A stretch of 64,000 nucleotides of DNA from Dimorphilus gyrociliatus (GCA_904063045.1 CAJFCJ010000005.1:243310-307309); one strand, 5' to 3'. Shown: positions 2,819 through 44,764, counted from the stretch's first letter. The notes: generated from the letters alone by a model not told the origin. Numbers and translations: made by a program.

Positions 2819-5800
2819 TTAATTATTGTTCCCTTCAGAAAAACAAGAAATGTTAGATCTGTCACTAGAATAATTTGAAGTATCGGGAAATCTTCTACTC
2901 ATCTTATCTTTGATTTTTAGCCAATATTTCGGTACATTCTCCCCGTCGAATAAAATATTAAACATAATTAAATGTTGATTGTTCAACTGTTTATTAAGAA
3001 ATTTCCAAAATTCATCAGATAGTTCCGAATTGCCACTTAGATCCAACAAAGTCAGTTTTTTAGGTTTGGATAAATAATTAGTTATACCATTTAAAATTGT
3101 ATCGTTCAAGTTGCATTCCATCATATAAATTTCACTTATATGCTTTGAAAATTTATGCAAAACCGTTAGAATCTTTTCACCAGATCTTCCATTCAATTTA
3201 TTTTCACTAATATCAAAAATTTGTAAATATTCGAAATATTTCAAAGATGTAATTAACGAATTTGTAATTGAAGAAGTGAAATCACATTGAGATAACTTTA
3301 ATACTTCCAATTTTCGATTATTCTTACATAATCCATTTAATAGAACTTCTCCGTATTCATCAAAGAGTTCATTTTCACTAAGATCCAAAAATTTCAAATT
3401 CTTGTTTCTGTTAAAACTATCTTCTAAGTATTTTAAAGGTTGATCAAGACAGCTCAATTTAATATCTCGTAATTCAATGTGAAGAAGGCTTTTCTTTTTG
3501 CTCAAGCAGTCAATAATCTCTTTAGAAAAGACGCTAAAATCATTTTTCATAATATTTATAACTTCTATTTTGTCTAATTTCATTAAAAATTCAACCAAGT
3601 AGCTATCTTCTCCTGGCATTAAATTGTTGTCGTACAAATATAATTCACGAAGTTGGCTCTGCCGTTCATTCAATGAAAGCAATAATAGTTTACATACTTC
3701 GTCACCTATCTTATTTTCGCTGATTGAAAAGCTAGTTAGATTTGAACAATTCACCAAAACTTTACAAATCTCAAGATTGTCGAAACCCTCTGGACTTATC
3801 CTCAAAGATCGAAGACCTAATTTTTCTAATAGTTTCGGATTAATTTCTTCCGATTGAAATAGTCTATTTGTATTGCCGAATGTACAGAATGCAATATCTA
3901 ATGTCCGTAGAGAAGGAATTGATTTTAACATATCACAGAATGTTTTGTTATTAATCTCTTCCTGTTTACGTAATCCTAGTTTTTCTATTACACTTCCTGG
4001 ACGAGATATAATGGGGAATATTGATTCACAGTTTAGATTTTCAGTGTTTAAACATCTGCCGATTTGGTCAATCTCATTGCATGTTTTGCATTTTCCCAAT
4101 TCTAAATATTTTATTTTCGTATTTTTTTCAAAGATTTTTAGAAAACTATCTTGATTCCCTTGTAAATCAAGAGTACTTTTCCAGAACGATAACTCTTGAA
4201 TATTACTGCAATACTCTCCAATTTTTGAAAGAACTTTGAAACCTACTGTTGACTTATCTAAAAATAAAATACTCAAACAATCCTTACTATTCTGTATTAC
4301 TTTTGAGAGATTGTGCGTTACATCAATACATCCGTAAGAGATAGATAAAGTTTTCAATTTCAGCCCTCCTTCGTGGATTGTTTCCAGTATAGCATTCCAA
4401 CTGGAGCTTGTAAATTGTTGTGGTATGAAAGTTAACCTATATAATCGCAAAGTTTTTATATTTTCCATTGTTTTCATAAATGAAATATTATTCCAACAGT
4501 TAAAAAATATTACATCAAGAATTGACAAGGAATGATGCAATCCCTTGCTGTAGGACACCTTTGATAATAACTCCAAATGTTCATCATTCAGAACTATATT
4601 CTGAATATTCACAGACCATATTTCAAATTCTTTATTCTGTAATATCTCAAGAAAATATTTCAAATATTTAGACGGCGTGGCGTCTTCATTAATATCCAAA
4701 ATGTTGAATTTCAAAGTAAAATCAATAATGGAAATAATTTCTCTCAAAGCCGATAAATTAAAAATATCATAATCAATAAACTGTACGAGTTTAATATACG
4801 CAAAGTTTTTGCTTTTATCCGAAGAGAAAAATGTTGAGTTCTTTTTGCAGTTCAAAACTTTCAAGTTCACTAATTTTGAAATGCAACTTTCGATTGTCAA
4901 CAATAGACTTTTCTTTAATCCATTGTTATAAATATATAACTCTTCTAATAAGTTTGAATTATTAGAAATGAGGTTCAGTATATTTTCCATTTCACCGTTA
5001 AGTGCATTCGACGAGATATCTAGTATTGTCAGAACTTGAATGTTTATTATACGGATAATAGTCTCGTGTATACTTTCTCGCCTACTTTTAAAATAATCTC
5101 TTAAGATGATCTCTTTTGGCCAATGATCTTTCGTTGTTTGAAATTGTATACATGCCAAACCGTTTTTAGACAGGTTAATTCCTTGCAAATTAGCAAAAGT
5201 ATCATCTAAATCTAATCTAATGGTACCTTCTAAAAAGCAATCTTCCAAAGATAAATGTATCAAGTTCATTGATAAACTTCTCATATTAGATAAACTTTCA
5301 TATCCAGTTATACCAATTTCATTTCTACTCAAGTTTAAAATTTCCAAATTTTTTAATTCCCTTAAAAATTCCAGATTATCGTCTAATTGACAATTTTCTA
5401 ATTGGAGATTTTTCAATTTGGATAGCTCTGAGATTTTACCCGTCATAATGCTCCCAAACTCGTTACAAAATACCGAATCAGACAAATTTAGATATACGAT
5501 CGTTGAAGGAAATATTGCGGTATCTTCTTTGATATTTTCTCGCAGAAAATGGCAAGCAGTTAATTCTAAATGTGTCAAGTTGTTATATTGATAACGGATT
5601 GACTTATTTCCCAATAACGACTTGATATTATTGCCAGACAAGTACAACTTCTTTAATGATCGACTCTCAAAAGGTATTCTAGTATCTAAATCAGTTATAG
5701 AGCATTGACTCAGGTATAATTCAGTCAAACTTGTACATTTTCCAATTGCGTGATACAAGTAAACCATGCCTTTACTTTCTATTGAATTCTTGCTTAAACT

Positions 5801-12300: not shown

Positions 12301-14480
12301 ACAATATCTTCAAATATATGATGAGTCTTTTCGATTCGAAATATGGTCCGTCACTTATAGAAGCTTATAGAAAATTAGCTACAGCTCGATTTAGCTACTT
12401 TCAAGACTATCATACTAAAATTATGAACACTGTTAAATCTTACGAATATGGTAGTTCTTACTTACCTCTTTTACCAGACTTATGTCAAACTGAGCAACTA
12501 ACCAAATCTTATACCAAATTGGTCTGGGATAAAATAAAAGTTACTGCTCCAGAATATGTTAATACTGTATTCGCTGCTCTAAGAGAAATTGCTTTACGAA
12601 ATAAAAGTGCTGTTGCTGTTTACAAATCAGATTTGGAAAAGATGAAAGATAATCCTAAGATTCATGACCAAGTTCTTGGAATTTTGGATGTTTTAGAAGG
12701 TAGAACTTTGGAAAAAGTAACAAATGATATTGATGAACAAAGAGAGGACATTGAGAATCTCGATTCCAGAGTCACTGAAAATGAAGAAAAGATTGTTGTT
12801 CTCGATGCCGATGTTAAAGAAACAAAGAAAGATGTTGCTGCTGTAAAATTAGATATGAAGGAAGCAAAGAAACGCCTTGGTCAAATTGAATATACAATGA
12901 AAGGACTCGACGAAAGAGTTGAACAACTAAATCATATGACTCTATCACACGCTCCAGCATGGTCTCGTCATGTTTCAGAGTTAATGAATGTCAAGTCTGA
13001 TAATGATTGGAGACTTCTCTCTATGAAATTGAACTATTCTAATGATGATATTCGAAATTGGGCTACTCAACCAGATCCTTGTCTGTCAATGTTGGACGAA
13101 TGGTTCGCTACACACAAAACTAGAGAAGCTACTTTTGCTATTTTAAATAATTTGAAAGAAATGAACAGACTCGACGCTGCAGAAATTGTGGAAAATGCTT
13201 TAGCTGATGTAAAAAATGTTGTTAAAGATGATAAAGATGAAGAATTTGAAAAACCTGAAATATTCCTCAGCTATCAATGGGGACATCAACAAGAAGCTAA
13301 AATGTTAAAGAAACACCTAGAGATGGCCGGCTTTAAAGCCTGGATGGACATTGGTCAAATGGGTGGAGGCGATAAACTATATGCAAAAATTGATGATGGT
13401 GTAAGATCAGCTAAAGTAATCATTAGCTGTGTAAGTGAGAAATATGCAAAATCAGCCAATTGTTGTAGAGAAGTAAATCTATCAACTAACCTTGGTAAAC
13501 CAATGATTCCTTTACTTATGGAAAAACTCCAATGGCCGCCTGCTGGTCCGATGGGTCCAATTATGTCGGAATATCTATATGTTCAATTCTACAAAAATGG
13601 AGGCATGCAAAAAGGTGATACTGTATTTTGGATGCCTCCTAAATTTCAAGAGCTACTGATGCAAATTCGGTACTATGTTGTTCCTGATATGAAATTAATA
13701 ACTAAAGATTCTCCATATGCTGGATGGATGAATCCACCTGAAGAAATTATAATAATACCAAAGAGAGAGCAAAAGGCTATAGAATCTAAAAAATCAAATA
13801 CTAAAAATGAGGCAGAAGTGATAAGTCCCGATGTTTTCATCTCTTATCAATGGGATAAACAACCTCAAATCAAACGCCTATATAAGAAGTTGAGTGGATT
13901 GGGATATCATTGTTGGCTGGACATAATGCAAATGGGTGGTGGAGATTCACTATTTGATAAAATTGATAAAGGAATCAGAGGTTGTAGAGTTGTTATTTCC
14001 TGTGTCACACCGAAATATGCTTTAAGTGCTAATTGTCGAAGAGAAGTTTCATTATCGGGAGCATTAAATAAACCAATCATACCATTATTATTGGACAATA
14101 TGAAGTGGCCTCCAGAGGGACCAATGTCAATGGTATTTACTCAACTGTTATATATAGGTTTTCACAGGAAGAAAGATGATAAACTATGGGAAGGCGATGA
14201 ATTTAATCAATTGATTTCGAAAATTGATATGAATGCACCTGGTGGCAAAAATGAGCAGCAATCATCTAGCAAAGCAATAAACAATGAAACTGAAAAGAAA
14301 AATACACAGACAAAGAAAACGGATGAAGAGTCTAAGAAAGAAGAGAAAAATGTTGGAGATGAAGCCAAACAGCCTGAACAGTCTCCTCAACCTAAACAAA
14401 GAGATAACTCTGAACCCTCATCTCATAATACTAACAATACCCCTCCGCCTAAAACATCATCGACATGTAATATTCTATAA
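9344..14480 (+). CDS. Paralog A: multi-exon helical N-terminus + coiled coil + DEATH + TIR + TIR + CaaX protein
   Basis: Exons joined by GT-AG introns (e.g. 9592-9657, 9812-9869, 12082-12144). First exon (..KYSPL..) is homologous to the first exons at 57865 and 63580. Last exon has heptad repeats, a DEATH motif (DWRLLSMKL...MLDEWF...LKEMNRLDAAEIVE), two TIR_2-like domains (IFLSYQW, VFISYQW; SANCxRE) and terminal CNIL*. Confidence 0.85.
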
Positions 14481-20845: not shown

Positions 20846-21464
20846 AATTGATTTATTTATAATAAACATAGATATTTACTCATAGATTTACCATATTTAA
20901 GAATATCATCTGCATAGTTTTCATTACATTTACGATTTTCTAAATCATTTAGAACGAGATAAAAACTACCATTCTCCGTTCCATCCTTTAATTGAATAAG
21001 GAAAGAAACAATAGATTAAAAAAAACAAAACTATTATTGAATTCTATTTACGTAAATGATATCAGTTTCGGGAGTATCCCTTTTAAAACCTAATTTTAAC
21101 GTATGTATAGTAACCATTGCTTTGGAAATATCACGAAAAATAGTCATTATACTAATAATAGAAAAGTGTTTACAATCTTTCAATAACAGTTTTTTCATAG
21201 TAGAATCAGATTTAAGAAATATTCCATCGTAATTCCAGTTTTGCATAAATTTAAAGTCTAGTTTTTTAAGGGTTTAATAAAAAAAAAGCACAATTCAAAA
21301 CAATTGAATATTATACATTCTCTAAATTCCACAATTTCTTTTTCGATTAATAAATTCGCTCTTTGTTGAATGAAAAATATATTGTTAAAAGTGTTGAAAT
21401 AACGTTATTAATATGATATTATTACAGTTCGCTCTTTCTTCCCAGTTGAATTTCTTTATATTTA

Positions 21465-24400
21465 TTAACGAAATCGAAAAATTTCGTTGTACAATAGATT
21501 ACGGGATTAAATAATGAATTTAATGGCATAACTACTATAACAATCCAAGGATAAACTCTCTCGTCCAGCAATACTTTTTCGCTTATTGCAAAAAAACCTA
21601 AACGAAATTAATAAACTGTAAAAACAAAAGGTTTTTATTCAAAGTCTTAGATTATAGTTAACCTAAAATTGATATTGGCAGAAAGCATATTGTATTTGTT
21701 AATACAATAAATAGACTTGTTCTTACTATATTCACAATTCTCCTTCGAAAAAGTACTTTATTTATCTTCCTTGATTTTAAAATATGTTTAATAATTCCGA
21801 AATAGAAGAATACTATTAATAATATTTCAAATATCATAAAAGGACTAAAAGTTGCAAAAGAAAATTGCCATCCGCCAGTCTTCTCTGTAGTTATATGAAG
21901 TGAGAAACAAACAGCCGATCTTGAATAATATTCCTTTCAAAGAAAATAACCATAAGCTTTATTATTATACTTTATTTATGAAATTTATTCCAACCTCAAA
22001 TAAGAAAGGTGGTAGAAGAGATAGAAAGAGAGAAAAAGAGAGGAATATAAGCAATGTGATAACATAGTAAGTTAGCTTAAAAAAATATTTTTTATACAAT
22101 AATGAATGACAAATTGCAAAATATCGTTCGGCGGTTATCAGTAGTAAACAAAAATTTGAATACGTTATCGACATATTCGCTAATACGCCGCAAAATGTAC
22201 ACAAAGCGCTATATCTCCAATTGGAATCGTACTCCATATAGACACCTCTGTAATATAAATCAGCTCCAGCAATTATAACCAAATAGATGTTTAAAATAAA
22301 ATCCGAAATGTGAAGGCAAAGATATAAAATACTCAAGTTTTTAAAGTTTTTCAACTGAAGAATAATTGCTGTTGTATTACCTAATGATCCAAAAAAGATA
22401 ATTATCCAGATAACAACTCTTAGATACCAAAATCCAATTAAATCGGAACAAACTTTAATAACAGACGAATCTGGTACGCATTCAATCATTTTGAATTTAT
22501 ATTTCTTTGTCATACAACACAATTGAAAACTTTCCGAGTATAACGTTTGTAAAGAATTCAGATTACTCAACAACTGCAACGACAATACTTTTGGTAATTT
22601 TGTCTTATTTAGATGAAGATTTTCCAGATTTCTTAAATGTTCAAGCGAATTTCCATCAAAGTATTCAATGGACAAATCAGAAATTTTCATTGTAATTAAA
22701 CGTTTCAACGTGGAGAATGAACTCTGTTCAATTCTCTTTAATAAACTATTTGAAATGTCCAAGTAGGTCAAATTGTTTAAATGTTCAAAGAATTCGGTGG
22801 GCAGTGAAGAGAAAGGATTGCTGCTCAAATCCAAATATTGAACGTTTCTCATCTGTAAACTAGCCTCATTTAACGGCAATTTGTCTATTCTGTTTCTCCT
22901 TAGGATCAGAATAATCATATTGTTTCTTCCGAGACGAGGAAATTCATCTATTTCGCTATTTTCGATAGAAAGTTCAACCAGCTTATCCATCTTTCGAATG
23001 TTGAATGCAGTTTTGAACGGCATAAACTTTAAGGAAAGTCTCTTCACTTCGTATTGAAATGTGAGATTGATCTGTTTCAATTGTAAACTATTTACGCATT
23101 GAACTTGAATTATTGAATGGCAATTGCAAGTTGGAGGACAACTAAACGACGTTGAATCTATACAATGAGCTTCGTCGTTTCCCTGATCGCAGTCAATGAT
23201 TCCATCGCATACTCTACTTAAATTTAAAAAGTTTCGCTGATTTTTACATTTGAATGAAGATGGAGGACCAAAGTTTTCTGTTCCGATAGAAAATCCAATA
23301 AATACACGTTACTTTATCAATTAATTACATTATATTCTTTATACATACTACAAGCATCTTCGTCATCTCCATAATGGCATTGTATGATACCGTCGCAGAC
23401 GTGTTTTAAAGGGAGACAGTAGTTTTTACCTTTGCATTGATATTCACCAAACTGACAGACCATATCTTCGCATTGAAGCAACTCAGTGAATGGAAAAGCT
23501 GCTCTAGTTTGAAGTTTTCCAAATGAGTTATATTTAATACGACAATAGGTTTCACTGGCGTTTTTAGTAAAATTGTATGCTTTATAGATATCTTTTATTC
23601 GAATATGATTTTTCTCGAGCCAATTGTCCTTATTTCTATTAGGGAAGAAACGTTAAAATCTCTCATTGATCACCGTGTAAATTACTGAAAAGAGAAATAT
23701 AAATTTATACAAGGAAAGTATTGTTGAACGACATTGTTCTGTTTGTTCGTCTTTTATTGATGAATATGTACAATCCGGTTTCAAATCACAAATTTGATCC
23801 TTTTTAAGGCAAATTTGTTCACAATAGTAAGTGCTACACCACTCTTGAAAAAGAAGAGTAAATATAATCTCTTACTTTATTATTTATATAGAAATAAATA
23901 TGAGTTAGTTCGTACGTTCACAAATCTTGCTTTCATCAGTTCCATCGATACAATTCTTTTCATTATCGCAATGTTGATCATTTGGTACAACTTGTTTATT
24001 TTGACAACGATAACTGTTACCAATGACAAAATGATAACTTTTATTCTATCTAATATTCAATATACTAGTAACGTTTACCCGTTTTCAGCATCACTAAAAT
24101 ATTCTGTAAAAATTTTATTAGAATTGTTAAAATACAGATCAATTAGCGAGATTTTCAATAATTAATACCGCAAAATGATTCATCACTTCCATCTGAACAA
24201 TCGTTAATAAAATTACAAACGTAATTAATAATTATTTGTTGTTTGTTGAAACATTGAAATTTAATGATATTTTCACATTCCAATTCGTCACTGCCGTCGT
24301 AACAATCATTTTCCCCATCGCAAACGTTAATAATATTAATGCAATACCTATCAGTTATACACGTAAATAAACCAAGAGGACAATTCGTTGTAGGCAATAA

Positions 24401-26957
24401 TTTAAGATTTTCATAACGAAATTCAAGTAAGAGATTTTCTAAGTAAGATAAAAGGTTTTCAATACAAACTATTTGGTAAAAGATACAATGACAAACCTAC
24501 AGTTTGTTCGCAAATAAAGAAATGTATAAATCTTTCAGTTTTACATTTAATTGTAAAAATGTTTGAATAGTCCATAACGAAGCAAGTATCGTTAGTTTTA
24601 CGTATAACTAGGTATTTGAGATGATTTTTGAATAGTATCCTAGGTACTTGATCTTCAAACATGTACTCGCTTTGATAATAAATCAGTAGTTGATTGATAA
24701 GAAAGTTATATGTCTATAACATTCCAACCTGACTGAAAAGGTTCCATACATTCCAGTAATTTCCCTGGGAGATTGAAAATCAATTGGAATACGTACATTC
24801 GCCACATATTCACTTTCAATGTTAATTTTAAAAGTTGTTTGTATCTTTAATCGAAATAGAATCTTAACCATCATAGCTTCGCCAATAGAATCCGTACTAA
24901 TTAAAGATTTATTCTCCTTTTTACAAATTAATCCCGCCTCGTAAGCCGTATACTTTTTGGATTTATTAAAAAAATCAGAAGGGTTTGTATAATGCATCGA
25001 ATAGCATTTTGTATCAAAATTAAAATCATCCTTTGATTTACAATCTTAGAATAAACAATAAGAAAAACAGAAATTCCATTGTTAATTATAAATGATAAAG
25101 AATGATAATTTTCTCTTTTTTACCTCTTAATGATGAATCATTTCTGCAATTCAGCAAGATTTTAGTTGAAAAGACATATTTTAAATAGTCTTTCTTTTGT
25201 AAATTAGTTTGGCAACATTCCAAATTTGTACAATTATCAGAACAATAAAGCATAAGGAACATATCTCTCCATGAACTTGGAGCGGGTAAAGGAATTGAAA
25301 ATGTTGCGTAATTATAACCAAAATATTTACAAACTTTCTAAAAGTTTGTTAAAAAACAAAAAATTGAATGAAATTCTATTGAATTCTTACGAAAGATGTT
25401 CCAACAATCAATGGATTCATTAAAACGTTTAACCATAAATTAAGAAACTGCTTTTGTAAGTAACCAACAAGAATATTTGGTTTATTATGCTGATGCTTAT
25501 AAACTGGTTGCGATTCGTGTTGAAATATCCTGAATTTTTCATCTAAACAACGAATAATACTATACAAGTATCCTATATTAAACTTGAACGCTTAAACCTC
25601 TAGTTGTAGAATTTAAACATTGAATTGCGCATAGGTTAAGTAAGTTATCATTAGAGATTTTTTGTTTATAGTAACATTCATCCAATGAACTAATTTCCGC
25701 ATAGCATACCGTTTCGAATATAGCCATTCTGGTAAAATGTCTAGTATGCTTTGGACACTCTTCCTGTAGAAGTTTTCTAGCTGTAACGTAATTTAATTTA
25801 CGACAAAGTATATGTTGAGTGAAAAACATCATTTGTTTCATAGGGAAATATATTGAAACTGTAACGTATTTTCTTGATATTATATAAGGGAAATATCTAT
25901 GATTTCCTAATGGATAGAATTCAAATTTCTCAATTGCTAGATCTGAAAACAATTGAATGTTTGTCTATATGAAATTTGAATATTAGATAATTAAACCTTC
26001 GATAATTGATGTACATTTTACACCTGTACATTTTGAAGGTGATCTTCTACCTTCCAGAGTAAAATTAACTTCGTTACCGAAGAATTTTTTACCCCTGGCC
26101 TCTACGCTTCTATAACCATCCGTATTTAGGAATAGGTATCTCTTTTTGCAAACATCTACCATTGTCAAACTCTCTTTACACAAACTGTACGTTTCCTTCT
26201 TATATCTAACAAATACATAATCTATTAAATCTCTATGACGCCGTCTCTCTTGTTTCCAGGTAAACAAGTCTAGTTGGTTTTTATTTGAAAATGGAAGAAG
26301 ATATAAGGGATAAATGAATTAATAGTATATTTGAAAGTGTTACATAGAGTGTTGGTTTTAAAACAAGTAATCTTTAATATTGGAAGAACAGAGAACAACT
26401 TTGGACAGTTACGTTCCAATAAGCCCTTTCTATTTTCGTATAAAAATACATTTATCATATAGTCTATATCAATGTTTACTTACATATGTGTTCTAGGTTT
26501 ATAATACGAAAACAGTTTTAAAATTGCTGTATGATTTTCTTTTAAACAATAAAGATAAAAACGATTATTTAAATCTATTTAAATGATGTTTGTTACCAAT
26601 CTTAACCAATTCTTTAGATAGTAAATTATACATTGGATCAAATCCTCCTTTTTTACATAAGCTCCTTCCCAGTTTAAAAGTGTCGGCAACATTTTCAAAA
26701 TAGGCTATACTTAGAGATACATTGTATTGCTTCTTTCGTCTTCTTGGCTTATATTTCACATATGCCGTATACTTTAAAGGTGTTTCTTCAATTTTCTGAC
26801 CAATGGCAAAATATCTATAGCTAGTTTTCATACTACTCATAGTAATGGAAAGACAATATTTAAATTCCTTTTTCTTCTTTGCCGAATATAACTGATGAAT
26901 TTCTATACTGATAATATAAATAAACAATGCAATAGAACATTTGCGAAGATGAAACAT
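21465..26957 (-). CDS. GRL101-like LDLa-LRR GPCR with SRCR and C-type-lectin-like ectodomains (copy L)
   Basis: Signal peptide at 26957. SRCR-like exons (GYLQ...W..V...VCKYFGY), a CLEC-like exon (KCYSMH..AYEAGLICKK), LDLa repeats ([13 protein letters not shown]), LRRs. 7TM has ERY in TM3, TNTICFLP in TM6 and PLNSLFNPVIY in TM7; TAA at 21465-21467. Confidence 0.85.
22398..23400 (-). repeat. Left copy of ~1003-bp near-identical inverted repeat (partner 31067-32069)
   Basis: The reverse complement matches 31067-32069, including a 71-nt intron. I found about five substitutions by eye; similarity falls off abruptly at both ends. Confidence 0.9.
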
Positions 26958-27297
26958 ATTCGAAAAAGTAAAGAAATAGAGACAAGAGTTTCATTTCTTT
27001 CTCCTCATCATTTTCTCTTCGTTTTCATTCATGTAATCAATCTTCTTTTATTGTTTATAACAATGAAAGCTATATAATATATTATATTATTTTCAATGTA
27101 ATTCATACGTTCTTCTTTCTTTTATTAAAAAATATTCAACTTGGAGAAAAATGAATAAACAGAAATCATAACAAAAAGAAAATTGAACGATTGTTTTCGT
27201 GTTTATATTAAGAAATTCCATTGAAATTTTCTACTGAAAAAAAGAAAAGAAATGATTAAATGACGAAGAAGGAGACAAACTACGATCATAATTCATT

Positions 27298-30200
27298 ATG
27301 ACTTGTCTAAGACAGTTAATAATCTTTAATTTCATTGTTGGCTGCCTATTCGAAAAGGTAATTCCAAAGTCAAAATTACGGACTGACGCTTTCTTTTTGG
27401 ATGAAAAAATGACGAAACTAAGACTTGGGGAGACGTTGTTAGAAGATGATGAAAAGATAACGGCTGGAATTTTCTATTTGGACACAATTTCAGAGAAACT
27501 ATATCCGATTACAATGCAAGATACTGACATATTGAAATACTCTTTCACAGTTCTTATTGGCATTGGTTATACATTATGTAGAAGGAACAGTTCCTACGAT
27601 TGTCATTTTAATATTCCGAATGAATATCAAGTCTATACAAGTAGTTATTTTATATTTGTAACATTACATTCCTAATAATATTTTCAAGATGAGACGGTCT
27701 TAAGAGTGAAATTTGGAAAATCCTACACAGGAGGCATTCATCTGTAAATACTTTTAATGAAAAAACTATCTTCTCCAACATAATCCTTTATTATTCTTTG
27801 TAGATATAGGGATAATTGGGCAACTGGCTATGCCTATGTAAAATTACTTAGGATGAGTTGCTTTAAAAAGAATAGGCCGAGTTGGTTTTGAGAAAATAAA
27901 CAATTTACATTGAACAATGATTGATTAATTATCTTTCTATTTTTATCAACAGTGTTCTATAGTTGGATGTCTACTAATAACACTAAAGTTTTGGTTCGGT
28001 ACAATAATAGATCATATTATCTCATTCCAGATGAAACTACAAATAAAACTCAAATTTGTCAAGATTTCTATCTCTTTCCAAAAAAGTTTAAACCTTCAAG
28101 AAAGAGATATTTTTACGGGAATAAAACACTTTTTAAATTATCAGGACGTTCCCCAAAATCTAAAGTAAGAGTTCATTGTCCAAAATCACCTCACGGTATT
28201 CAATTTATTCTATTCTATAAAATCTAATGAATACAATCATCTTCCCTGTTATGTTTCTATTCCTAAGATATAAAATTAGAAAAAGTAATTGATATATCGA
28301 ATATGAGAAATTCTAACATTATATTACCTAGAATTATATCAAGGAAATATGGGATGTTAATGCCTATTTTCAATTATTACTATAGTACAGTGGTTGCTTA
28401 TCACCTTTGCCGTCTATACAATTTCGACACTTTTAAACATGTACCCAAATCGTGTCATGCCGGAATTCATCTAGAATCTCAAATTTTCACTGTTAAATGT
28501 TTCTTTAATTCAACATCTTTTTATAATTGCGAATACTATGATGCTCTTTCCCTGCAAATGTGTTCTATAGAATGTACAAATGTGTCCGACAACGTTCAAG
28601 GTTCGGAACTAAGATAAAATCTCTTTTGTAATTCCATCTGATTTGTTTCTGTTTGAAATAGCTAAATACCGTCTCTACACTGTAAGTGGTAAAGCTTTAT
28701 ATAAAGATTCCAACAAAAAACCGAATTCTATTATTGGATTTCTGCAAGTTAAAACATTTAGTAAATGGCTATATGTATCACTTCCATCATTTAGAAAAAA
28801 CGTCTCCAATGTATGTATATGTATTTAACTGTATTTGAATAAGTTATTTGGAGCTTTCTCTATTCTTCTTCTTCTTCTTCTCTCTGTCTCTCTGTATCTG
28901 TAGATTGTATGCAAATATTTCGGCTATAAACATTCAACTTTAAGTCTGGCCAAAATAGTTGACAAAGAAGTAATAGAAAGGGAAATGTCTTGCTCAAGTT
29001 CTGAGAGTAAATTGGACAAATGTTACTATAGATATCCAATAGCCCATAATAAGTTTCGCTTCAAACAAGCGTATTGCCGTAACGATCGACCATTCAAAAG
29101 TACTTGAACAAATGTTCTAAAAATAGAATAGCGATATTTAACATTGTTGCTTTGTTTAAAGCTTGCCCAGAAGAGAAAGATTTCTTCTACGATGGAAATT
29201 GTTACAAGTATTTTCATGATATACTTTCGGTAAATAATCAAAAGAGCGATAGGATCAACTATCGGGAAGCTCAAACTATTTGCAGTCGGTATAATATGAC
29301 TATTATCAGCTTAAACACTATTGAAGAGTTAGTGATGATGGAATTTTCTCAATCGGAAAAAGAAATGCATAAGGTTATAGAGTACGCTGTGGACGATATG
29401 ACACACCTTGTAGATTTTCAAGCAATAGGTAGGATTAATTAAGAGATTATGTTGAGGAAGAGTAAAAACTAATTTTCTCTATTGTTTAAAGCGTTCAACG
29501 AACTAACGGAAGTTACTGGATTAAATGGATATGTTCCCATATTGTATAATTATTTAAATATAAGCATAAAGCCATATAATGCTGACCTACTTTATTGCAA
29601 AACTATAGACTTAAACAAAGAAATGATATGATGTCAATAGAGAATTTAAAAGATAACTATGAAGGGATTTTGTATAATAGAACATGGGATAAATGCTATG
29701 GAGTGCAGAAGAGACAATTACGATCAATTGGTTGTTTAAAAAAGCTTCCTATTTTAATGTGTGAAGATAAAAATAGTAAAAAAAAATCACTATTGTTTAC
29801 TAAAACAATAATAAATACACGGCGAAATTCTAGATGAATTCTTTCCAAAAATTCAATTTAACTATTCGCAAATCGTATCATTATCAATTAAATGCCCTAT
29901 TACTATGTTTACATGCGAAATTGATGGTTATTGTATTAATTACGTCTACGTTTGTGACGGTAAAAGGGATTGTTACGACGGTTCTGATGAAAAATCTTGT
30001 AAACGTTACTTTATACCTTTTAAATGTTTGAACGGTGAAGAAATATCAACAAATTTCGTATGCGATCATACTAAAGATTGTCAAGACGGAAGTGACGAAA
30101 CGTTTTGCTGTAAATATTGACCATTTTTTCCACAAGTAATCATTTCTTTATCATTCATTTCATTTTTAAAAGTTTTTGACTGTGCTCAAGATAACAATAC

Positions 30201-33038
30201 GTAATACTATCTTATCATAATTAATGAAAATAGGTCATTCTTTATGGTGTTTAAACATTTAGTTTTAGGTGTAAAAATGGGCAATGTATTGCACGAAATC
30301 ACTATTGTAATAATGAAAAAAATTGTATAGATGGTAGTGACGAAGGACCTCAATGCGAAAGTAAAAATAAGTAAGAAATAACCATTTTAATCGTAAAAAA
30401 CTATGATTTATAATGGCAGGTCTTTGTCCATTCTATTTTTGCGATAATATGTGTCATGGTTCAAGCCAATTCTGCCTTTTTAAACCGGATTGTTTCATAA
30501 AGGACAGAATTTTAAGGCATTTTAACTCTTGTGTGGAAACTTTACGGTAAAAATCTTTTATGAAATAACAAAATAAACTTACAACTGAAAGGTTAAGGTT
30601 AGGGTTAAATACTGAAGAAAATGTCCACAATTTTACCTCTTTACACCAATTCTAACAACCGGTCGACAAACTATTTCGTACTTTTTTCAGCCTCTAGTTT
30701 AGCACTAATTCTAGTACAGAAGGAAACTAAGTTTCGATAGGCCAAACACTAAAAATACCCATAGACTTGCCACAGACATTAACTTCAGTAGACATTTTCT
30801 AATTCTTATCTTTTAATATAAAAAGACAATCTCTTTCGATGAAAAACTTTTGGAAGGCTAAATATAGCACAGATGATATATTGAAGGCTCATGGTTATTC
30901 GAGAGAAAACAGTGAAACCTATTGTAGATTACGATACGATTCATTTAAACGATTAAAAACATTATCGAATTATCCATATAACGAATTGGCAAATTGCACA
31001 AACACAAAATGTCAGATTGGGGAATATCAATGCAGGGATAAGAACTATTGTATTCGATTAGAAAATGTCTGCGACGGTATTATACAATGCCATTACGGAG
31101 ATGACGAAGATGCTTGTAGTATGTATAAAGAATATAATGTAATTAATTGATAAAGTAACGTGTATTTATTGGATTTTCTATCGGAACAGAAAACTTTCGT
31201 CCTCCATCTTCATTCAAATGTAAAAATCAGCGAAACTTTTTAAATTTAAGTAGAGTATGCGATGGAATCATTGACTGCGATCAGGGAAACGACGAAGCTC
31301 ATTGTATAGATTCAACGTCGTTTAGTTGTCCTCCAACTTGCAATTGCCATTCAATAATTCAAGTTCAATGCGTAAATAGTTTACAATTGAAACAGATCAA
31401 TCTCACATTTCAATACGAAGTGAAGAGACTTTCCTTAAAGTTTATGCCGTTCAAAACTGCATTCAACATTCGAAAGATGGATAAGCTGGTTGAACTTTCT
31501 ATCGAAAATAGCGAAATAGACGAATTTCCTCGTCTCGGAAGAAACAATATGATTATTCTGATCCTAAGGAGAAACAGAATAGACAAATTGCCGTTAAATG
31601 AGGCTAGTTTACAGATGAGAAACGTTCAATATTTGGATTTGAGCAGCAATCCTTTCTCTTCACTGCCCACCGAATTCTTTGAACATTTAAACAATTTGAC
31701 CTACTTGGACATTTCAAATAGTTTATTAAAGAGAATTGAACAGAGTTCATTCTCCACGTTGAAACGTTTAATTACAATGAAAATTTCTGATTTGTCCATT
31801 GAATACTTTGATGGAAATTCGCTTGAACATTTAAGAAATCTGGAAAATCTTCATCTAAATGAGACAAAATTACCAAAAGTATTGTCGTTGCAGTTGTTGA
31901 GTAATCTGAATTCTTTACAAACGTTATACTCGGAAAGTTTTCAATTGTGTTGTATGACAAAGAAATATAAATTCAAAATGATTGAATGCGTACCAGATTC
32001 GTCTGTTATTAAAGTTTGTTCCGATTTAATTGGATTTTGGTATCTAAGAGTTGTTATCTGGATAATTATTCTTTGTATATTATTATTTAATTCGTTAGCG
32101 CTGGTTCTTGAAATAAAAAACTTTAAGCCGTCGAGTATTATATATCTATGCGTTCATTTATCGCATTTACTGTTAGGCGGCTATCTAATTATGATAGCAA
32201 GTACGGATCTAGTCTATAGAGGTTCCTATATGGAATATGATTCTGAATGGAGGTACAGTAATTTGTGTAGTTGTACTGGAACACTATTGAATGTAATAGT
32301 AACTTTTTCAAACTTGTGCCTTGTAATGTCAACTGTGGATCGATATTTATTGATAAATAGTGGATTTTCTTATAAGAATTTTCACAAGACAATGAATTAT
32401 ATAATAATAATGATGATATTATTCATATTTTCAACTATTTATGCTGGTTTTCCATATTTCTTTCTTGAGGTTAATATAATAAAAATACAAAGATTTCTCT
32501 CTGTTAAAAACTGTTATTCATTTCAAAAAGGACTACTACTCTAAGTCAATATTTTGCTTTTCAATACATTTAAATTGGAAATATTCAATGAATTGGTTCT
32601 ATTCAATTATATCTTTGAATATATTATTATCATTTAAAATATTAATGATTGTATCGTTATTCATACGATCTTTAAGTGTTTTATCAGAAAATAGAACAAA
32701 TGAATATAGAAAATTGAATAGTTGGAAAAAAATTCAAAATATCCTTAAATTATTCTATCTTTTATGTTTTTGGGATTTTGGATTAATAGTGCAATTATTG
32801 TATATTGGTATTGAAATTTCTCTGCTGTAAGATGGAGAGTTATATTATCTAATTCAATTTTTTTATAGATTTAACATCATTTGTACATGACGTTCAATTT
32901 GAAGAGGATCTCTATTCAATTATCTTTATTTTAGTAGTATGCATTCGTGGAATATCATTGCCTTTCACTATTTGCTATCGACATTTAATGAAGCTTTTTA
33001 AAAGTTTTAAAACACGTCATTTAGTATTAATGTATTAA
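27298..33038 (+). CDS. GRL101-like LDLa-LRR GPCR with SRCR and C-type-lectin-like ectodomains (copy R); TM6/TM7 motifs degenerate
   Basis: Signal peptide at 27298. SRCR ([29 protein letters not shown]), CLEC ([21 protein letters not shown]), LDLa repeats, LRR exon 31190-32469 and DRY in TM3. Last exon after intron 32808-32868 reads [12 protein letters not shown] (no NPxxY); TAA at 33036-33038. Confidence 0.8.
30661..30756 (+). mobile_element. Fragment related to the Tc1-like TIR at 50792, inside the long GPCR intron
   Basis: GGTCGACAAA and TTTCGATAGGCCAAACA both occur in the left TIR at 50792-50840, in the same order but with different spacing. Confidence 0.4.
31067..32069 (+). repeat. Right copy of ~1003-bp near-identical inverted repeat (partner 22398-23400)
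   Basis: Covers the end of an LDLa exon, an intron, the last LDLa, all LRRs and the start of TM1. The ORF-track proteins are identical apart from K/E until VVIWII. Confidence 0.9.
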
Positions 33039-41329: not shown

Positions 41330-42806
41330 CTATATATAAAGATATCTATAATTAATAACAAATTGAATAGAATTAAAGCATCTCTTACTTAATGTAAGTC
41401 CAACTTTCATAATAATATGACAAAGGCTTCTCCATTCATTCTCGTATTGTTTATTATAATCTGTCCATAGAACTATTTTTAACACCTTCTCTAATAAAAC
41501 ATTCTCATCTTGATTTAATAATTTCATTCTTTTATCTATAAATAGTTTTAAATAAGATCTCATTATCTGAAAAGATATTAATCGGATAAGATCGGATAGA
41601 ATAGGCCTATATTTATTTACTAGAAGTATTTTCTTATGATTTAATTTAAGAAGAAATTCATCCGTTTCCGTTTTGCTCATGACTTCTAAACTGGACGATA
41701 AGAATAGAAAGTAGTTTTTTAATTCTGGTGCAGGAATGATATAGTGCAATTCGTATAGAAGATTGAATTCCTCTATTATATAATTCTCATTCCAAATCTA
41801 TTTGTTTGAATAGGGCATTTGAACGTTTTCTTTTTAACCAAAAATCTATTTATATATTTACCTTATAAACTCTAGGAAAGATAATTTCTTTACGAATTTT
41901 AGAATTTTCACTAAAATTTACTTGAACATGTCCAAAATAACGTAATTTTGAATGTTTTTGAATAAATTCGCTTGAAAAATGTTGATTGAACAGTATAAAA
42001 GACCGTTTTTAAATACTTTTCCCCTCGTAAAACACTTACCTTACATCATTTTCCGTTAATTTACCGAACGACATTGAAATTTGAAATAAATTTTTCCAGT
42101 AGCAATTTGCAGATAAAATATATTTTACAGTTTCAGTAAAATTGAAATTAGTTCTTTGTTTAGATTTTCTAAATACAATTCTTTCTAAATTTTCTAAATT
42201 TGCTAAACTCTTTAAATCTTCAACTTGACAATTTTGCGGAAAAGCAATAAATACAAATCTCTTTAATCTCTTTAAATTTTCAATACAACTAAACCTTTCA
42301 ACTTGAGTATGAGATATTCTTAAATATTCTAAATTATGAAATTCTGAGCAGATTATCTCAAATCCATTAGTTTTTAGATTAGTATGTTTTAAATTTAAAT
42401 ATTTAATACTGCTAAAATCAATTCTTTGGCATAATCTATAAAATTTATTCTTTGGTGTTTTCTTGTTATTCTTTCTATTCTTCTTAATGAACGATATTAG
42501 ATCGTTCAATTTGATTTTCTCCAAATCGAATACTTTCCATTGTTTCGGCGGATATTCTTTAACGAACGATAAGATAGACGTTGTATTAATTTTTTCAGCT
42601 TCGAAATATAAGTGCCTCTCTTTAAACGAGTACTTTTTTATCAATGATAGATATTTCTTGGAAAATTTACCATATTTTTTCAAGTATAATTCAAATATTT
42701 CAGTTTTCAAGTCGTACGGAAAGCGAGTTTTCAATAGAAGTTTAACGTAAACTGGAAAATTCTCTACAATATATAGAATGATAATATTTTTCAATATAAG
42801 CATCAT
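41330..42806 (-). CDS. ZYG11/ZER1-like LRR protein (paralog 3) with a degenerate BC-box; 3' end approximate
   Basis: ILKNIIILYI..FPYDLKTEIF, LRRs (IKYLNLKHTNL, LEYLRISHT) and WKNL. Exon 2 EFIQKHSKLRYFG is homologous to paralogs 1 and 4. Confidence 0.65.
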
Positions 42807-43122: not shown

Positions 43123-44764
43123 ATGTATTTGTTAACTTTAAAACAATGTAGTTTGTATGTAATTGAGAAAAATCTATTTTTTCTATTTAAACTATGTACA
43201 TTCTTTAGATTATCTTTTCCGGAACAAATTTCCAATTCAATCTTTCATTTCGTTCATAACGAAAAAAGGAAATTACGTAATAGCGAATTAAAATTCTTTA
43301 ATTCAAATATTCTTAAGTTAACTGAAATTCGTCTATTCTACGATAAATATTCATCCAGTACCGATTGGAGTTTTCTAAGTAATCATAGACTTCGTGTACT
43401 ATATATTCATAATTTTCAAAAAATTGAATCGTTCATTGAATACGTTAATCCAGTATTCGTTAAGGAATTATTTATTGATAATTCATTTTCGTTGTCTGGA
43501 AAATTGAAATTATTCTTTAGAAATATGAAATCAATACATAAATTATCGTTAACTTCTAATTCTTTAAATAACTATCCTGTACATTTCTTATTAACGGAAA
43601 TACCGCATTTAAAAGAGATCTATTTCTATAATTTTACGTTTGTTGATGAAGATTTTGATAGTTTCTTTCCAAATTTGACGTCATTTGAAAACTTGAACAA
43701 TTTAACGCCTACAAACGATCTTTTGTATATAAAAGATATTGGAAATTTGACGAAAATTGATCTAGCTATACCATTTCGAAAAATAAAAGATGAAGAATTC
43801 ATAATGACTCTACAACATGCCGATGTATGGAAAAATTTGCGTATACTGATATTAAGAGAATATAGAAGAGTGTTCAATTTGTCTATGAGGTAAGTTTAAG
43901 TAATTGAAATAATTAGATTTCATTCTCTCTCTCTCTCTTTCTTCCCCTTTATAGAGAATTTATTGAAAATCATCAGAAATTAGAATTCGTTGCCCTACTC
44001 TCCAGTTCATTTGTTGATAAACAACCATCGAATATAAGTATTTCAACAGACGCGATATTGTTTAGCGACTGTTTCGACGTAAGTTTCCTTACTTTGATTG
44101 GAAGAAGAAACAATAAAAAACCTATTTGTTTATTGATATATTTTCAGGATAGTTTACACTTTACCGGTGAATTTTTATTCAAAGTTGTTAAATACCTAAA
44201 GCATTACTTTTGCCATTATTTCTATCATTGCCTAAACAATTGTATGAGAGAAGAAGTGAAAAACAGTAATTTCAAAAAAACCAACCCGAATATCGAATAC
44301 ATTTTAAAGGTATTCATTCATTAATATACAAAATACCTTTAAACCTTTATACTCTTATCTTTTCTATAGACTCTATTAGAAATACTTGAACATCATCAGA
44401 TTTTTCAAGAAGAATACTGTAAAACCTTCGAATCGCTTTCGCATTATAAGAAATGCTTTATATTCTTTGAATACTTAAAGAAGTTGGATCACGAGTATTT
44501 CTGGACGGAAGTAATAGTATATGCTACTAAAGTTGTTCGCAATAGAATATTTCAATCTTCAAGAGTTCTGTGGAATGATCGAGATTTATATTATAACATT
44601 TTTAAAGATCAAAGGCAACTCGTCGCAAAGGTAAATTAGCAAAAGGTAAATTATCATTTATTCTTATTATAATTCTATTGTTTTAATAGATGTACAATAT
44701 CAATTTACCTGAAAATGTGCAAAATGTAAACGCAATTTTGGATCCATTCTTCAAAAGCACTTGA
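43123..44764 (+). CDS. ZYG11/ZER1-like BC-box LRR protein (paralog 4), multi-exon
   Basis: TLKQCSLYVI + FPEQISNSI, LRRs, WKNLRIL. Exon 2 EFIENHQKLEFVALL; later exon SLSHYKKCF..FWTEV; putative TGA at 44762-44764. Confidence 0.7.

Follow-up and report, generated by a model that had tools for sequence, protein, structure and literature searches.

Two adjacent genes in a 64,000-nt stretch of DNA from Dimorphilus gyrociliatus (GCA_904063045.1 CAJFCJ010000005.1:243310-307309; this whole stretch is called the window, and positions are counted from its first letter) are predicted to encode G-protein-coupled receptors (GPCRs) of the GRL101-like kind, in which LDLa modules and leucine-rich repeats (LRRs) precede a seven-transmembrane (7TM) domain. 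The genes, here called L and R, diverge from a short common spacer and carry a block of 1003 bp that is almost identical between them. On balance we lean, with modest confidence, towards reading the two as an old two-gene unit in which a canonical L-type receptor stands beside an R-type receptor with a degenerate core, a recent gene conversion has passed between them, and R is probably a partner that does not switch. The window has a GC content of 29%, contains no N and lies on contig C5 of the 77.9-Mb genome, which is assembled in 349 contigs.

The gene pair and its converted block

Gene L occupies 21422..26957 on the minus strand (ATG at 26957, stop codon at 21424-21422) and gene R occupies 27298..33038 on the plus strand (ATG at 27298, stop codon at 33036-33038). 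L is recognised by its open reading frame (ORF) pieces, by Pfam matches to LDLa, LRR_8 and 7tm_1 and by a match to RXFP1, and R by tblastx collinearity with L, Pfam matches and open exons. The start codons are separated by an AT-rich spacer of 340 bp (26958..27297; 24% GC), presumably a bidirectional promoter, which suggests that L and R are co-regulated. A sequence-only reading of the window had already described two GRL101-like genes diverging from this gap, and the two start codons fall at its edges; the end which it gave for L, at 21465, falls short, the coding sequence running on to 21422.

The order of exons is alike in the two genes by tblastx collinearity, the N-terminal modules and the 7TM domain being diverged between them. 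Each gene begins with five to six cysteine-rich N-terminal exons and continues with several LDLa modules. A large exon then holds about nine LRRs between the last LDLa and the hinge, together with transmembrane segments 1 to 4 (TM1-4), and is followed by an exon for TM5-6 and one for TM7. The large exon lies at 21995..23277 (minus strand) in L, where it ends in PPFLFE before a GT in phase 0, and at 31190..32469 (plus strand) in R, where it ends in PYFFLE before a GT, again in phase 0. The TM5-TM6 exon, with a phase-1 donor in both genes, follows at 21663..21933 (minus) in L and at 32531..32807 (plus) in R, and the TM7 exon with the stop codon lies at 21422..21597 (minus) and 32869..33038 (plus), respectively.

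Homology searches of both genes were run exon by exon. Pfam finds Ldl_recept_a in L and R, two modules with E 1.6e-14 in L and 7.1e-20 in R and the last module with 1e-4 inside the large exon, and in both genes LRR_8 (E ~1e-22) and 7tm_1 occur together within one exon. The per-exon score of 7tm_1, 27 bits, is below the whole-protein cut-off of 30.5 bits because the domain is split over three exons. Among receptors of solved structure the large exon of L is matched best by RXFP1 (7tmw, E 5e-18), together with LHCGR, TSHR, LGR4 and FSHR, in a continuous alignment; its TM5-6 exon matches 7tm_1 with E 4.9e-6, has RXFP1 as its best structure match (E 4.6e-5) and shares 56-60% identity with four paralogues. 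Full-length library homologues (P0021, P0022, P0029 and P0059) have the same architecture and carry the motifs TD/NxxCWxP and NSxxNPxxY. By these predicted domains L and R are LDLa-LRR-7TM receptors of the kind formed by GRL101-like proteins and RXFP1, the type C leucine-rich repeat-containing GPCRs (LGRs). A search of 1.84 billion protein representatives returned family-level homologues only, with a top identity of 46%, and in a set of 5.8 billion proteins the large exon of L had a single match, at 46% identity, from a Logan assembly. The N-terminal modules gave sub-threshold matches only, to a UL45-type C-type lectin-like domain (E 0.1) in R and to SRCR (E 0.023) in exon n3 of L, and tblastn with the full-length homologues gave no match to the N-terminal part of L or R. 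Genome-wide, the TM5-6 exon of L yielded at least 150 scored matches from 269 candidates, nearly all of them open. An expansion of LDLa-LRR-7TM genes to at least 150 loci in a 78-Mb genome is very large; the GPCR repertoire of D. gyrociliatus has been described as canonical and conserved (PMC7854359).

A repeat search of 20-35 kb gave a single long inverted repeat, with arms at 22119-23457 and 31010-32348, and this search and a comparison in register placed the near-identical block at 22398..23400 (minus strand) in L and 31067..32069 (plus strand) in R. In the ungapped register x+y=54467 the identity per 50-bp window is 0.96-1.00 across 22400-23400, falls to 0.54-0.76 for about 300 bp on each side and then to a background of about 0.3. 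The arms differ at five of 1003 positions (22606, 22946, 23269, 23371 and 23386); two of these alter the amino acid (G/R at 23269, K/E at 22606), and the other three, in codons for I, Y and D, are silent. The borders are sharp, with about eight differences in the next 18-19 positions on each side, a drop that is complete within about 20 bp. A 71-nt phase-1 intron inside the block (23278..23348, minus strand, in L; 31119..31189, plus strand, in R; GTATGT...CAG) shows no difference at all. The block extends from the second half of the penultimate LDLa through the last LDLa, all LRRs and the hinge into TM1, of which it takes in about 13 residues before its 3' end at codon 304 of the large exon. 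The whole genome holds two copies of it, the next relatives being 66-68% identical; a repeat or transposon as its source was rejected on the same count of two copies in 78 Mb.

The longest perfect run in the block, 339 bp, excludes chance given that the coding sequence on either side differs by about 40%, and protein-level constraint is ruled out as the cause because the intron and the synonymous sites are identical as well. As intron and synonymous sites were carried along, the copying took place at the level of DNA, and a recent non-allelic (interlocus) gene conversion between L and R is well supported by the alignment. The block, with its approximately five substitutions and its unchanged intron, had been proposed by the sequence-only reading, and sliding-window identity reproduces it exactly; the mismatch count, the intron and the sharp borders likewise bear out its claim of recent conversion. 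The same reading had spoken of a shared ectodomain, which is true of the LRR and about one and a half LDLa modules; the N-terminal cysteine-rich modules and the other LDLa modules are 30-60% identical and of two different types.

Nucleotide identity 3' of the block falls with distance, from 62% in TM1-4 to 48% in TM5-6 and 42% in TM7, and is 63% in the LDLa exons upstream; this gradient is compatible with an identical island that has shrunk over time, although it is confounded by the acceleration of R described below. The ratios of LRR to TM1-4 identity with outgroups are intermediate and favour neither gene as the donor of the tract.

The receptor core of gene R

L carries all of the class-A activation residues, with D2.50, ERY, TNTICFLP (within TNTICFLPIS) and NPVIY. 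R keeps DRY in TM3, and the corresponding motifs of its TM6 and TM7, stretches of 12 and 10 residues, are altered: D2.50 in TM2 is replaced by H, P6.50 by D (CFWD, within LLCFWDFG), N7.45 by R, N7.49 by L and Y7.53 by I, P7.50 being retained. In TM7 an 11-residue segment of R aligns without gaps to PLNSLFNPVIY of L, with LPFTI exactly over NPVIY and RG over NS (7.45-7.46). R therefore lacks part of the class-A activation set (D2.50, E/DRY, CWxP, NPxxY) and is a family member by descent. The sequence-only reading had listed ERY, TNxxCxxP and NPVIY for L and, for R, DRY without NPxxY; these motifs read as claimed and the loss in R goes further, reaching D2.50, P6.50, N7.45, N7.49 and Y7.53. Splicing of R to a canonical NPxxY exon, an outcome which that reading had considered, was rejected, as tblastn with the exons of six paralogues (E<=5) found no canonical TM5-6 or TM7 exon on the plus strand from R to the end of the window. 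The TM5-6 exon of R has no match in Pfam or the PDB, whereas its counterpart in L matches 7tm_1 and RXFP1; it is homologous to the paralogue exons (E 7e-8) and 22% identical to that of L, and a search of the genome found an R-like exon nowhere else. As a separate observation, C6.47 is variable in some otherwise canonical members of the family (VWLP, SWLP).

All pieces of R that are homologous to exons are open and free of stops, the last two introns of both genes keep GT/AG and phases 0 and 1, indels between L and R are multiples of three, and R keeps hydrophobic TM segments and both extracellular-loop cysteines. Over the 7TM domain L and R differ at 389 of 837 aligned nucleotide sites (279 codons), and R is stop-free throughout. 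Third codon positions, at 0.46-0.69 divergence against a ceiling of about 0.71, indicate synonymous saturation, and because of this a simulation of stop avoidance and relative-rate counts were used in place of dN/dS. When composition-matched random substitutions were placed on the L sequence in 20,000 runs of neutral decay, about 1 run in 10,000 remained stop-free with 30% of the differences assigned to R, and none of the 20,000 did so with 50%. Divergence between L and R is lowest at second codon positions (0.26-0.42, vs 0.43-0.69). In a Tajima-type relative-rate comparison summed over three exons there were 76-82 amino acid changes unique to R and 18-25 unique to L with C44, C116a or C271 as outgroup (chi2 25-41), and 61 and 25, respectively, with C3 (chi2 15); R evolves about four times faster than L. 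A pseudogene was considered for R and rejected, stops, frameshifts and lost splice sites not being seen and the neutral simulation giving P<=1e-4. By the open exons, the conserved splice sites and phases, the stop-free 7TM domain and the retained TM segments and cysteines, R reads as a maintained coding gene rather than a long-dead pseudogene; it may still have lost its function very recently.

Recurrence of the pair in the genome

N-terminal exons fall into two types. Exons n1-n5 of L match the genes C44, C60, C116a and C271 (handles after their contigs), and whole-genome searches found R-type N-terminal exons only in R, C116b, C60p and, weakly and for exon n2 only, C44p; C60p and C44p are minus-strand genes upstream of C60 and C44, and C60p, like the pairs C5:536k/543k and C36 discussed below, is known from match coordinates only. 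Every R-type gene adjoins an L-type gene. This arrangement is found at four loci, head-to-head at three of them (the window, C60 and C44) and in tandem on C116. The spacers of the three head-to-head pairs have no motif of at least 9 bases in common.

In a tree of the trimmed core of exon n3 the R-type exons form a group with support of 83/92, united by four indels and by the signature YPRxxSKKYGM, and identity in this exon is 31-34% within the R-type as against 18-29% between types; the tree of exon n2 gives the same split with weak support (51/35). D2.50 is absent from all three R-type genes in which TM2 is readable, with H in R, Y in C116b and N in C44p. C44p has YKY for E/DRY, and C116b shows no recognisable TM6 or TM7 motifs; its TM5-6 exon is open. 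Among L-type genes, D2.50 and TNxxC[FW]xP are present in six of six and the TM6/TM7 motifs are kept in all six; E/DRY is present in five, C3 having DKY and TM3 of C60 being unreadable. C44p and C116b have large exons without a stop over 554 and 530 codons, respectively, in a genome of 29% GC. R and C116b were considered as close relatives in their 7TM domains, which was rejected with an identity of 33% over TM1-4. From the gene arrangement and the exon types it is likely that an old two-gene unit was duplicated as a block and that both of its members were retained.

Individual genes of these groups show further differences in structure. The large exon of C60 (L010:6176-7270) is interrupted in the LRRs by an in-frame stop (..ESLT*TQL..), and its reading frame does not extend past the early part of TM3, so that C60 is possibly a pseudogene; its TM5-6 and TM7 exons are still canonical. 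Close paralogues differ in intron loss (L012:4164-4604; L014:3672-5261; L008:1853-192), and in C271 TM5-6 and TM7 lie in one ORF. In C116b and C44p the exon of the penultimate LDLa is fused to the large exon and the 71-nt intron of L and R is absent.

Interpretation and known paired receptors

We propose that the L-type member retains a normal class-A signalling core and that the R-type member combines another set of N-terminal modules with a 7TM domain lacking the conserved switch residues. R would be transcribed from the shared 340-bp spacer and would be a membrane protein displaying the same LRR ligand-binding surface as L, probably unable to activate G proteins via the usual TM6/TM7 mechanism and acting beside L as a co-receptor, a trans-acting binder or a decoy. 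The 1003-bp mid-gene segment was copied from one gene to the other by interlocus gene conversion, and the identical island may be self-reinforcing, in that homology-dependent conversion would recur inside it and halt at the diverged edges, while tracts overwriting the distinct 7TM domain of either partner were probably removed by selection. Because the same pairing of genes is seen at three more loci, L and R may be a working receptor pair. Both readings of the shared LRR, that it is favoured and that it is merely tolerated, are kept here. A fuller version, in which a paired GPCR module driven by a bidirectional spacer was duplicated as a unit, kept its LRRs matched by conversion and has its two members act jointly, as a heteromer, by trans-activation or with one as decoy, in the recognition of non-self or of the environment, strikes us as rather unlikely.

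Conversion tracts were compared in five neighbour pairs of the wider family. In the window the tract of 1.0 kb covers one and a half LDLa modules, the LRR and the start of TM1, and in the C116a/b pair a tract of 786 bp with about four differences runs from the interior of the last LDLa to the start of TM1 (L011:5433-6218 vs L014:~4050-4835), its 3' end lying 5 codons from the border of the L/R block. Tracts confined to the ectodomain are found in these two homogenised L/R-type pairs only, and such a pattern would be expected if tracts overwriting a distinct 7TM domain were selectively removed (n=2). The LRR also sits mid-gene in the longest intron-free exon, where tracts are likeliest to fall anyway.

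A number of observations weigh against the reading that we favour. Homogenised LRRs are found in two of the four L/R-type pairs (the window and C116); the LRRs of C44 and C44p are 40% identical and have no block at the DNA level, and for C60/C60p the DNA comparison gave no second match on C60. Elsewhere tracts are placed quite differently. On C116 about 130 bp of TM2-TM3 form a further tract with 92-98% identity (L011:6400-6530), the genes of a head-to-head pair of another subfamily on C146 are ~100% identical over 2.4 kb extending from the LDLa exons across TM1-4 and into TM5 (L035/L036, 40.5-43.4k and 48.7-51.4k, with an N run just after the block in L036), the tandem pair C5:536k/543k shares 1072 bp at 97% over the hinge and TM1-TM7 with the LRRs excluded, and the tandem pair C36:147k/156k shares 2278 bp at 98% over the last LDLa, the LRR and TM1-7. 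Because tracts elsewhere cover TM1-4, TM1-7, the LRR with TM1-7 or TM2-TM3, their placement looks largely stochastic. Conversion is moreover seen in three TIR genes of the window (52905-54465, 58652-60211 and 12681-14270), which carry 1.56-kb blocks that are 99.6% identical in direct and 95.4% in inverted orientation. On their alignment these blocks are homogenised within sharp borders just as the GPCR pair is, and from the tracts found interlocus conversion appears to be frequent in this genome and to strike in varied places. Support for the R-type clade is moderate in the exon n3 tree and lower still for exon n2, with short exons and long branches, and region 300-440 of the large exon of R has no close relative in the set of 5.8 billion proteins. 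Finally, Y7.53 varies in the otherwise canonical members L020, L021 and L032 (contigs C5 and C146; NPIIT, NPYII and NPLIL), so that departures from NPxxY also occur outside R, and loss of a single motif is therefore on its own no proof of lost signalling.

Three further repeats and gene pairs were seen beside these tracts. On C146 a third fragment at 55990-56418 is 97% identical; a repeat of 636 bp with 96% identity follows a family gene on contig C83, outside the coding exons of that gene (L025:5345-5979 vs L026:4064-4699); and in the window two divergent ORFs of 256 codons, 316 bp apart, at 42039-42806 (minus) and 43123-43890 (plus), have weak LRR_4 matches (E 1.4e-4 and 0.023) and may be another head-to-head pair of LRR genes.

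The sequence-only reading had gone further and proposed that recent conversion keeps L and R matched to the same ligand, R serving as a decoy or biased partner. Put in full, this account has the identity of the LRR itself under selection, with repeated conversion matching a signalling L and a non-signalling R to a fast-evolving ligand in the manner of Siglec-5/14 or Siglec-11/16, and we regard it as possible but doubtful. It gains from the window and C116 pairs, each of which has a private LRR at about 0.5% divergence and a 3' border at the junction of ectodomain and TM1, from LRRs that diverge faster than TM1-4 among the family (38-58% vs 48-64% identity) as expected of a recognition surface, from the maintenance of R-type genes without activation residues and from immune-type (TIR) neighbours, and it can draw on precedent in paired receptors (PMC4042635, PMC5701461) and on the GRL101-like clusters of snails, which are presented as candidate parasite-resistance loci (PMC12297450). 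It loses with C44/C44p and C60/C60p, which are unmatched, with the remainder of the ectodomain, which is unshared, and with the tracts of other pairs, which include the 7TM domain, while the position of the LRR in the longest intron-free mid-gene exon would attract tracts regardless and the cases are only two. Selection for ligand matching is thus not established, in view of the unmatched pairs, the 7TM-covering tracts and the conversion of the TIR genes.

At the other extreme the pairing may be without function, R being a relaxed member of a birth-and-death family that is heading to loss or already untranscribed, and the block simply the latest neutral tract. The four-fold rate of R with its five lost near-invariant class-A residues, the unrecognisable TM6/TM7 of C116b, the in-frame stop in C60 and a family of at least 150 loci in which recent tracts are numerous and differ in extent would all fit, but a 7TM domain that stays stop-free at P<=1e-4 under neutral decay, intact splice sites and phases, indels in multiples of three, hydrophobic TM segments with both loop cysteines, and the presence of R-type beside L-type genes with long open exons at four diverged loci speak for maintenance, and we consider this explanation unlikely. 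Less probable by far is an artefact in which read correction, consensus calling or haplotype merging copied one paralogue over the other. The ~78-Mb published assembly is an early PacBio one, made with PBcR, Quiver, Pilon, HaploMerger2 and SSPACE-LongRead (PMC7854359), and in the comparable C146 pair an N run directly follows the block; such a pipeline could blur near-identical repeats, but it does not equalise sequences of 60-70% identity, which would not cross-map in polishing. The block moreover keeps exact register within two complete genes that are otherwise 40-60% diverged, with no indel at its borders and five differences retained, and blocks of other extents, seen in four further pairs and among the TIR genes, fit biology better than local error. 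We keep to the reading of L and R as a canonical and a core-degenerate receptor joined in an old unit and recently converted.

In their architecture L and R resemble RXFP1/RXFP2 and the mollusc orphan GRL101 (type C LGRs), which likewise join LDLa module(s) to an LRR ectodomain, a hinge and a rhodopsin-type 7TM domain. They differ in having several LDLa repeats and extra cysteine-rich N-terminal exons, in belonging to a family of at least 150 loci in 78 Mb and in including R-type members without activation residues. Among related receptors, LGR4-6 have an LGR-family 7TM domain that acts without classical G-protein coupling and keeps most class-A core residues, and glycoprotein hormone receptors can be trans-activated, the ectodomain of one protomer acting on the 7TM domain of another. 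In the snail Biomphalaria the SudRes2 region holds dense clusters of paralogous LRR-LDLa-(CTL)-GPCR genes, which vary in their presence or absence and in truncation and for which a role in non-self recognition is proposed (PMC12297450). These clusters are alike in their clustered lophotrochozoan LDLa-LRR-7TM architecture, but head-to-head pairing of canonical with degenerate genes and conversion tracts are not reported in the part of that source consulted (PMC12297450), and the C-type lectin domain is matched here only by the sub-threshold signal in R.

Siglec-5/14, Siglec-11/16 and CEACAM pairs are adjacent paralogues with near-identical ligand-binding regions and different signalling parts, whose identity stems from interlocus gene conversion with sharp borders (PMC4042635, PMC5701461, PMC2832619). 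L and R, too, are adjacent paralogues in which a near-identical segment with sharp borders takes in non-coding as well as synonymous sites, and of the ectodomain the LRR and one and a half LDLa modules are shared, the 7TM domain being distinct and the other ectodomain modules unshared. In contrast to L and R, which are predicted 7TM proteins, Siglecs and CEACAMs are single-pass members of the immunoglobulin superfamily with experimentally shown outputs, by inhibitory motif (ITIM) or by ITAM adaptor, and here just two of four pairs are homogenised. Plant head-to-head sensor/helper NLR pairs (RGA4/RGA5, RRS1/RPS4) have divergent genes, a short spacer, one canonical and one degenerate partner and duplication of the whole unit; they differ from L/R in being an unrelated, intracellular protein class with no shared converted recognition domain. 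Of these parallels the Siglec and CEACAM pairs are the closest functional one and the plant NLR pairs the closest genomic one.

Interlocus conversion in a clustered receptor family is ordinary and well documented, and the block alone would be routine; what is unusual is its context, the recurring divergent pairs of canonical and core-degenerate GPCR genes. A narrow literature search found no description of such gene pairs, or of such pairs sharing a converted ligand-binding domain, and only passing mentions of annelid GRL101-like genes. Because the arms of the block are identical, inverted and 1 kb long, they should permit inversion of the 7.7 kb between them, which is predicted to exchange N-terminal modules and promoters between the 7TM halves with neither gene broken. 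The GRL101-like family, expanded in molluscs and annelids, has been associated with parasite resistance in snails (PMC12297450). If the reading as a paired module is true, L and R would represent among GPCRs what paired Siglecs and plant sensor/helper NLR pairs are in their own families. A functional pair would carry the paired-receptor logic of vertebrate and plant immunity over to spiralian seven-helix receptors and offer an entry point to the orphan GRL101-like family.

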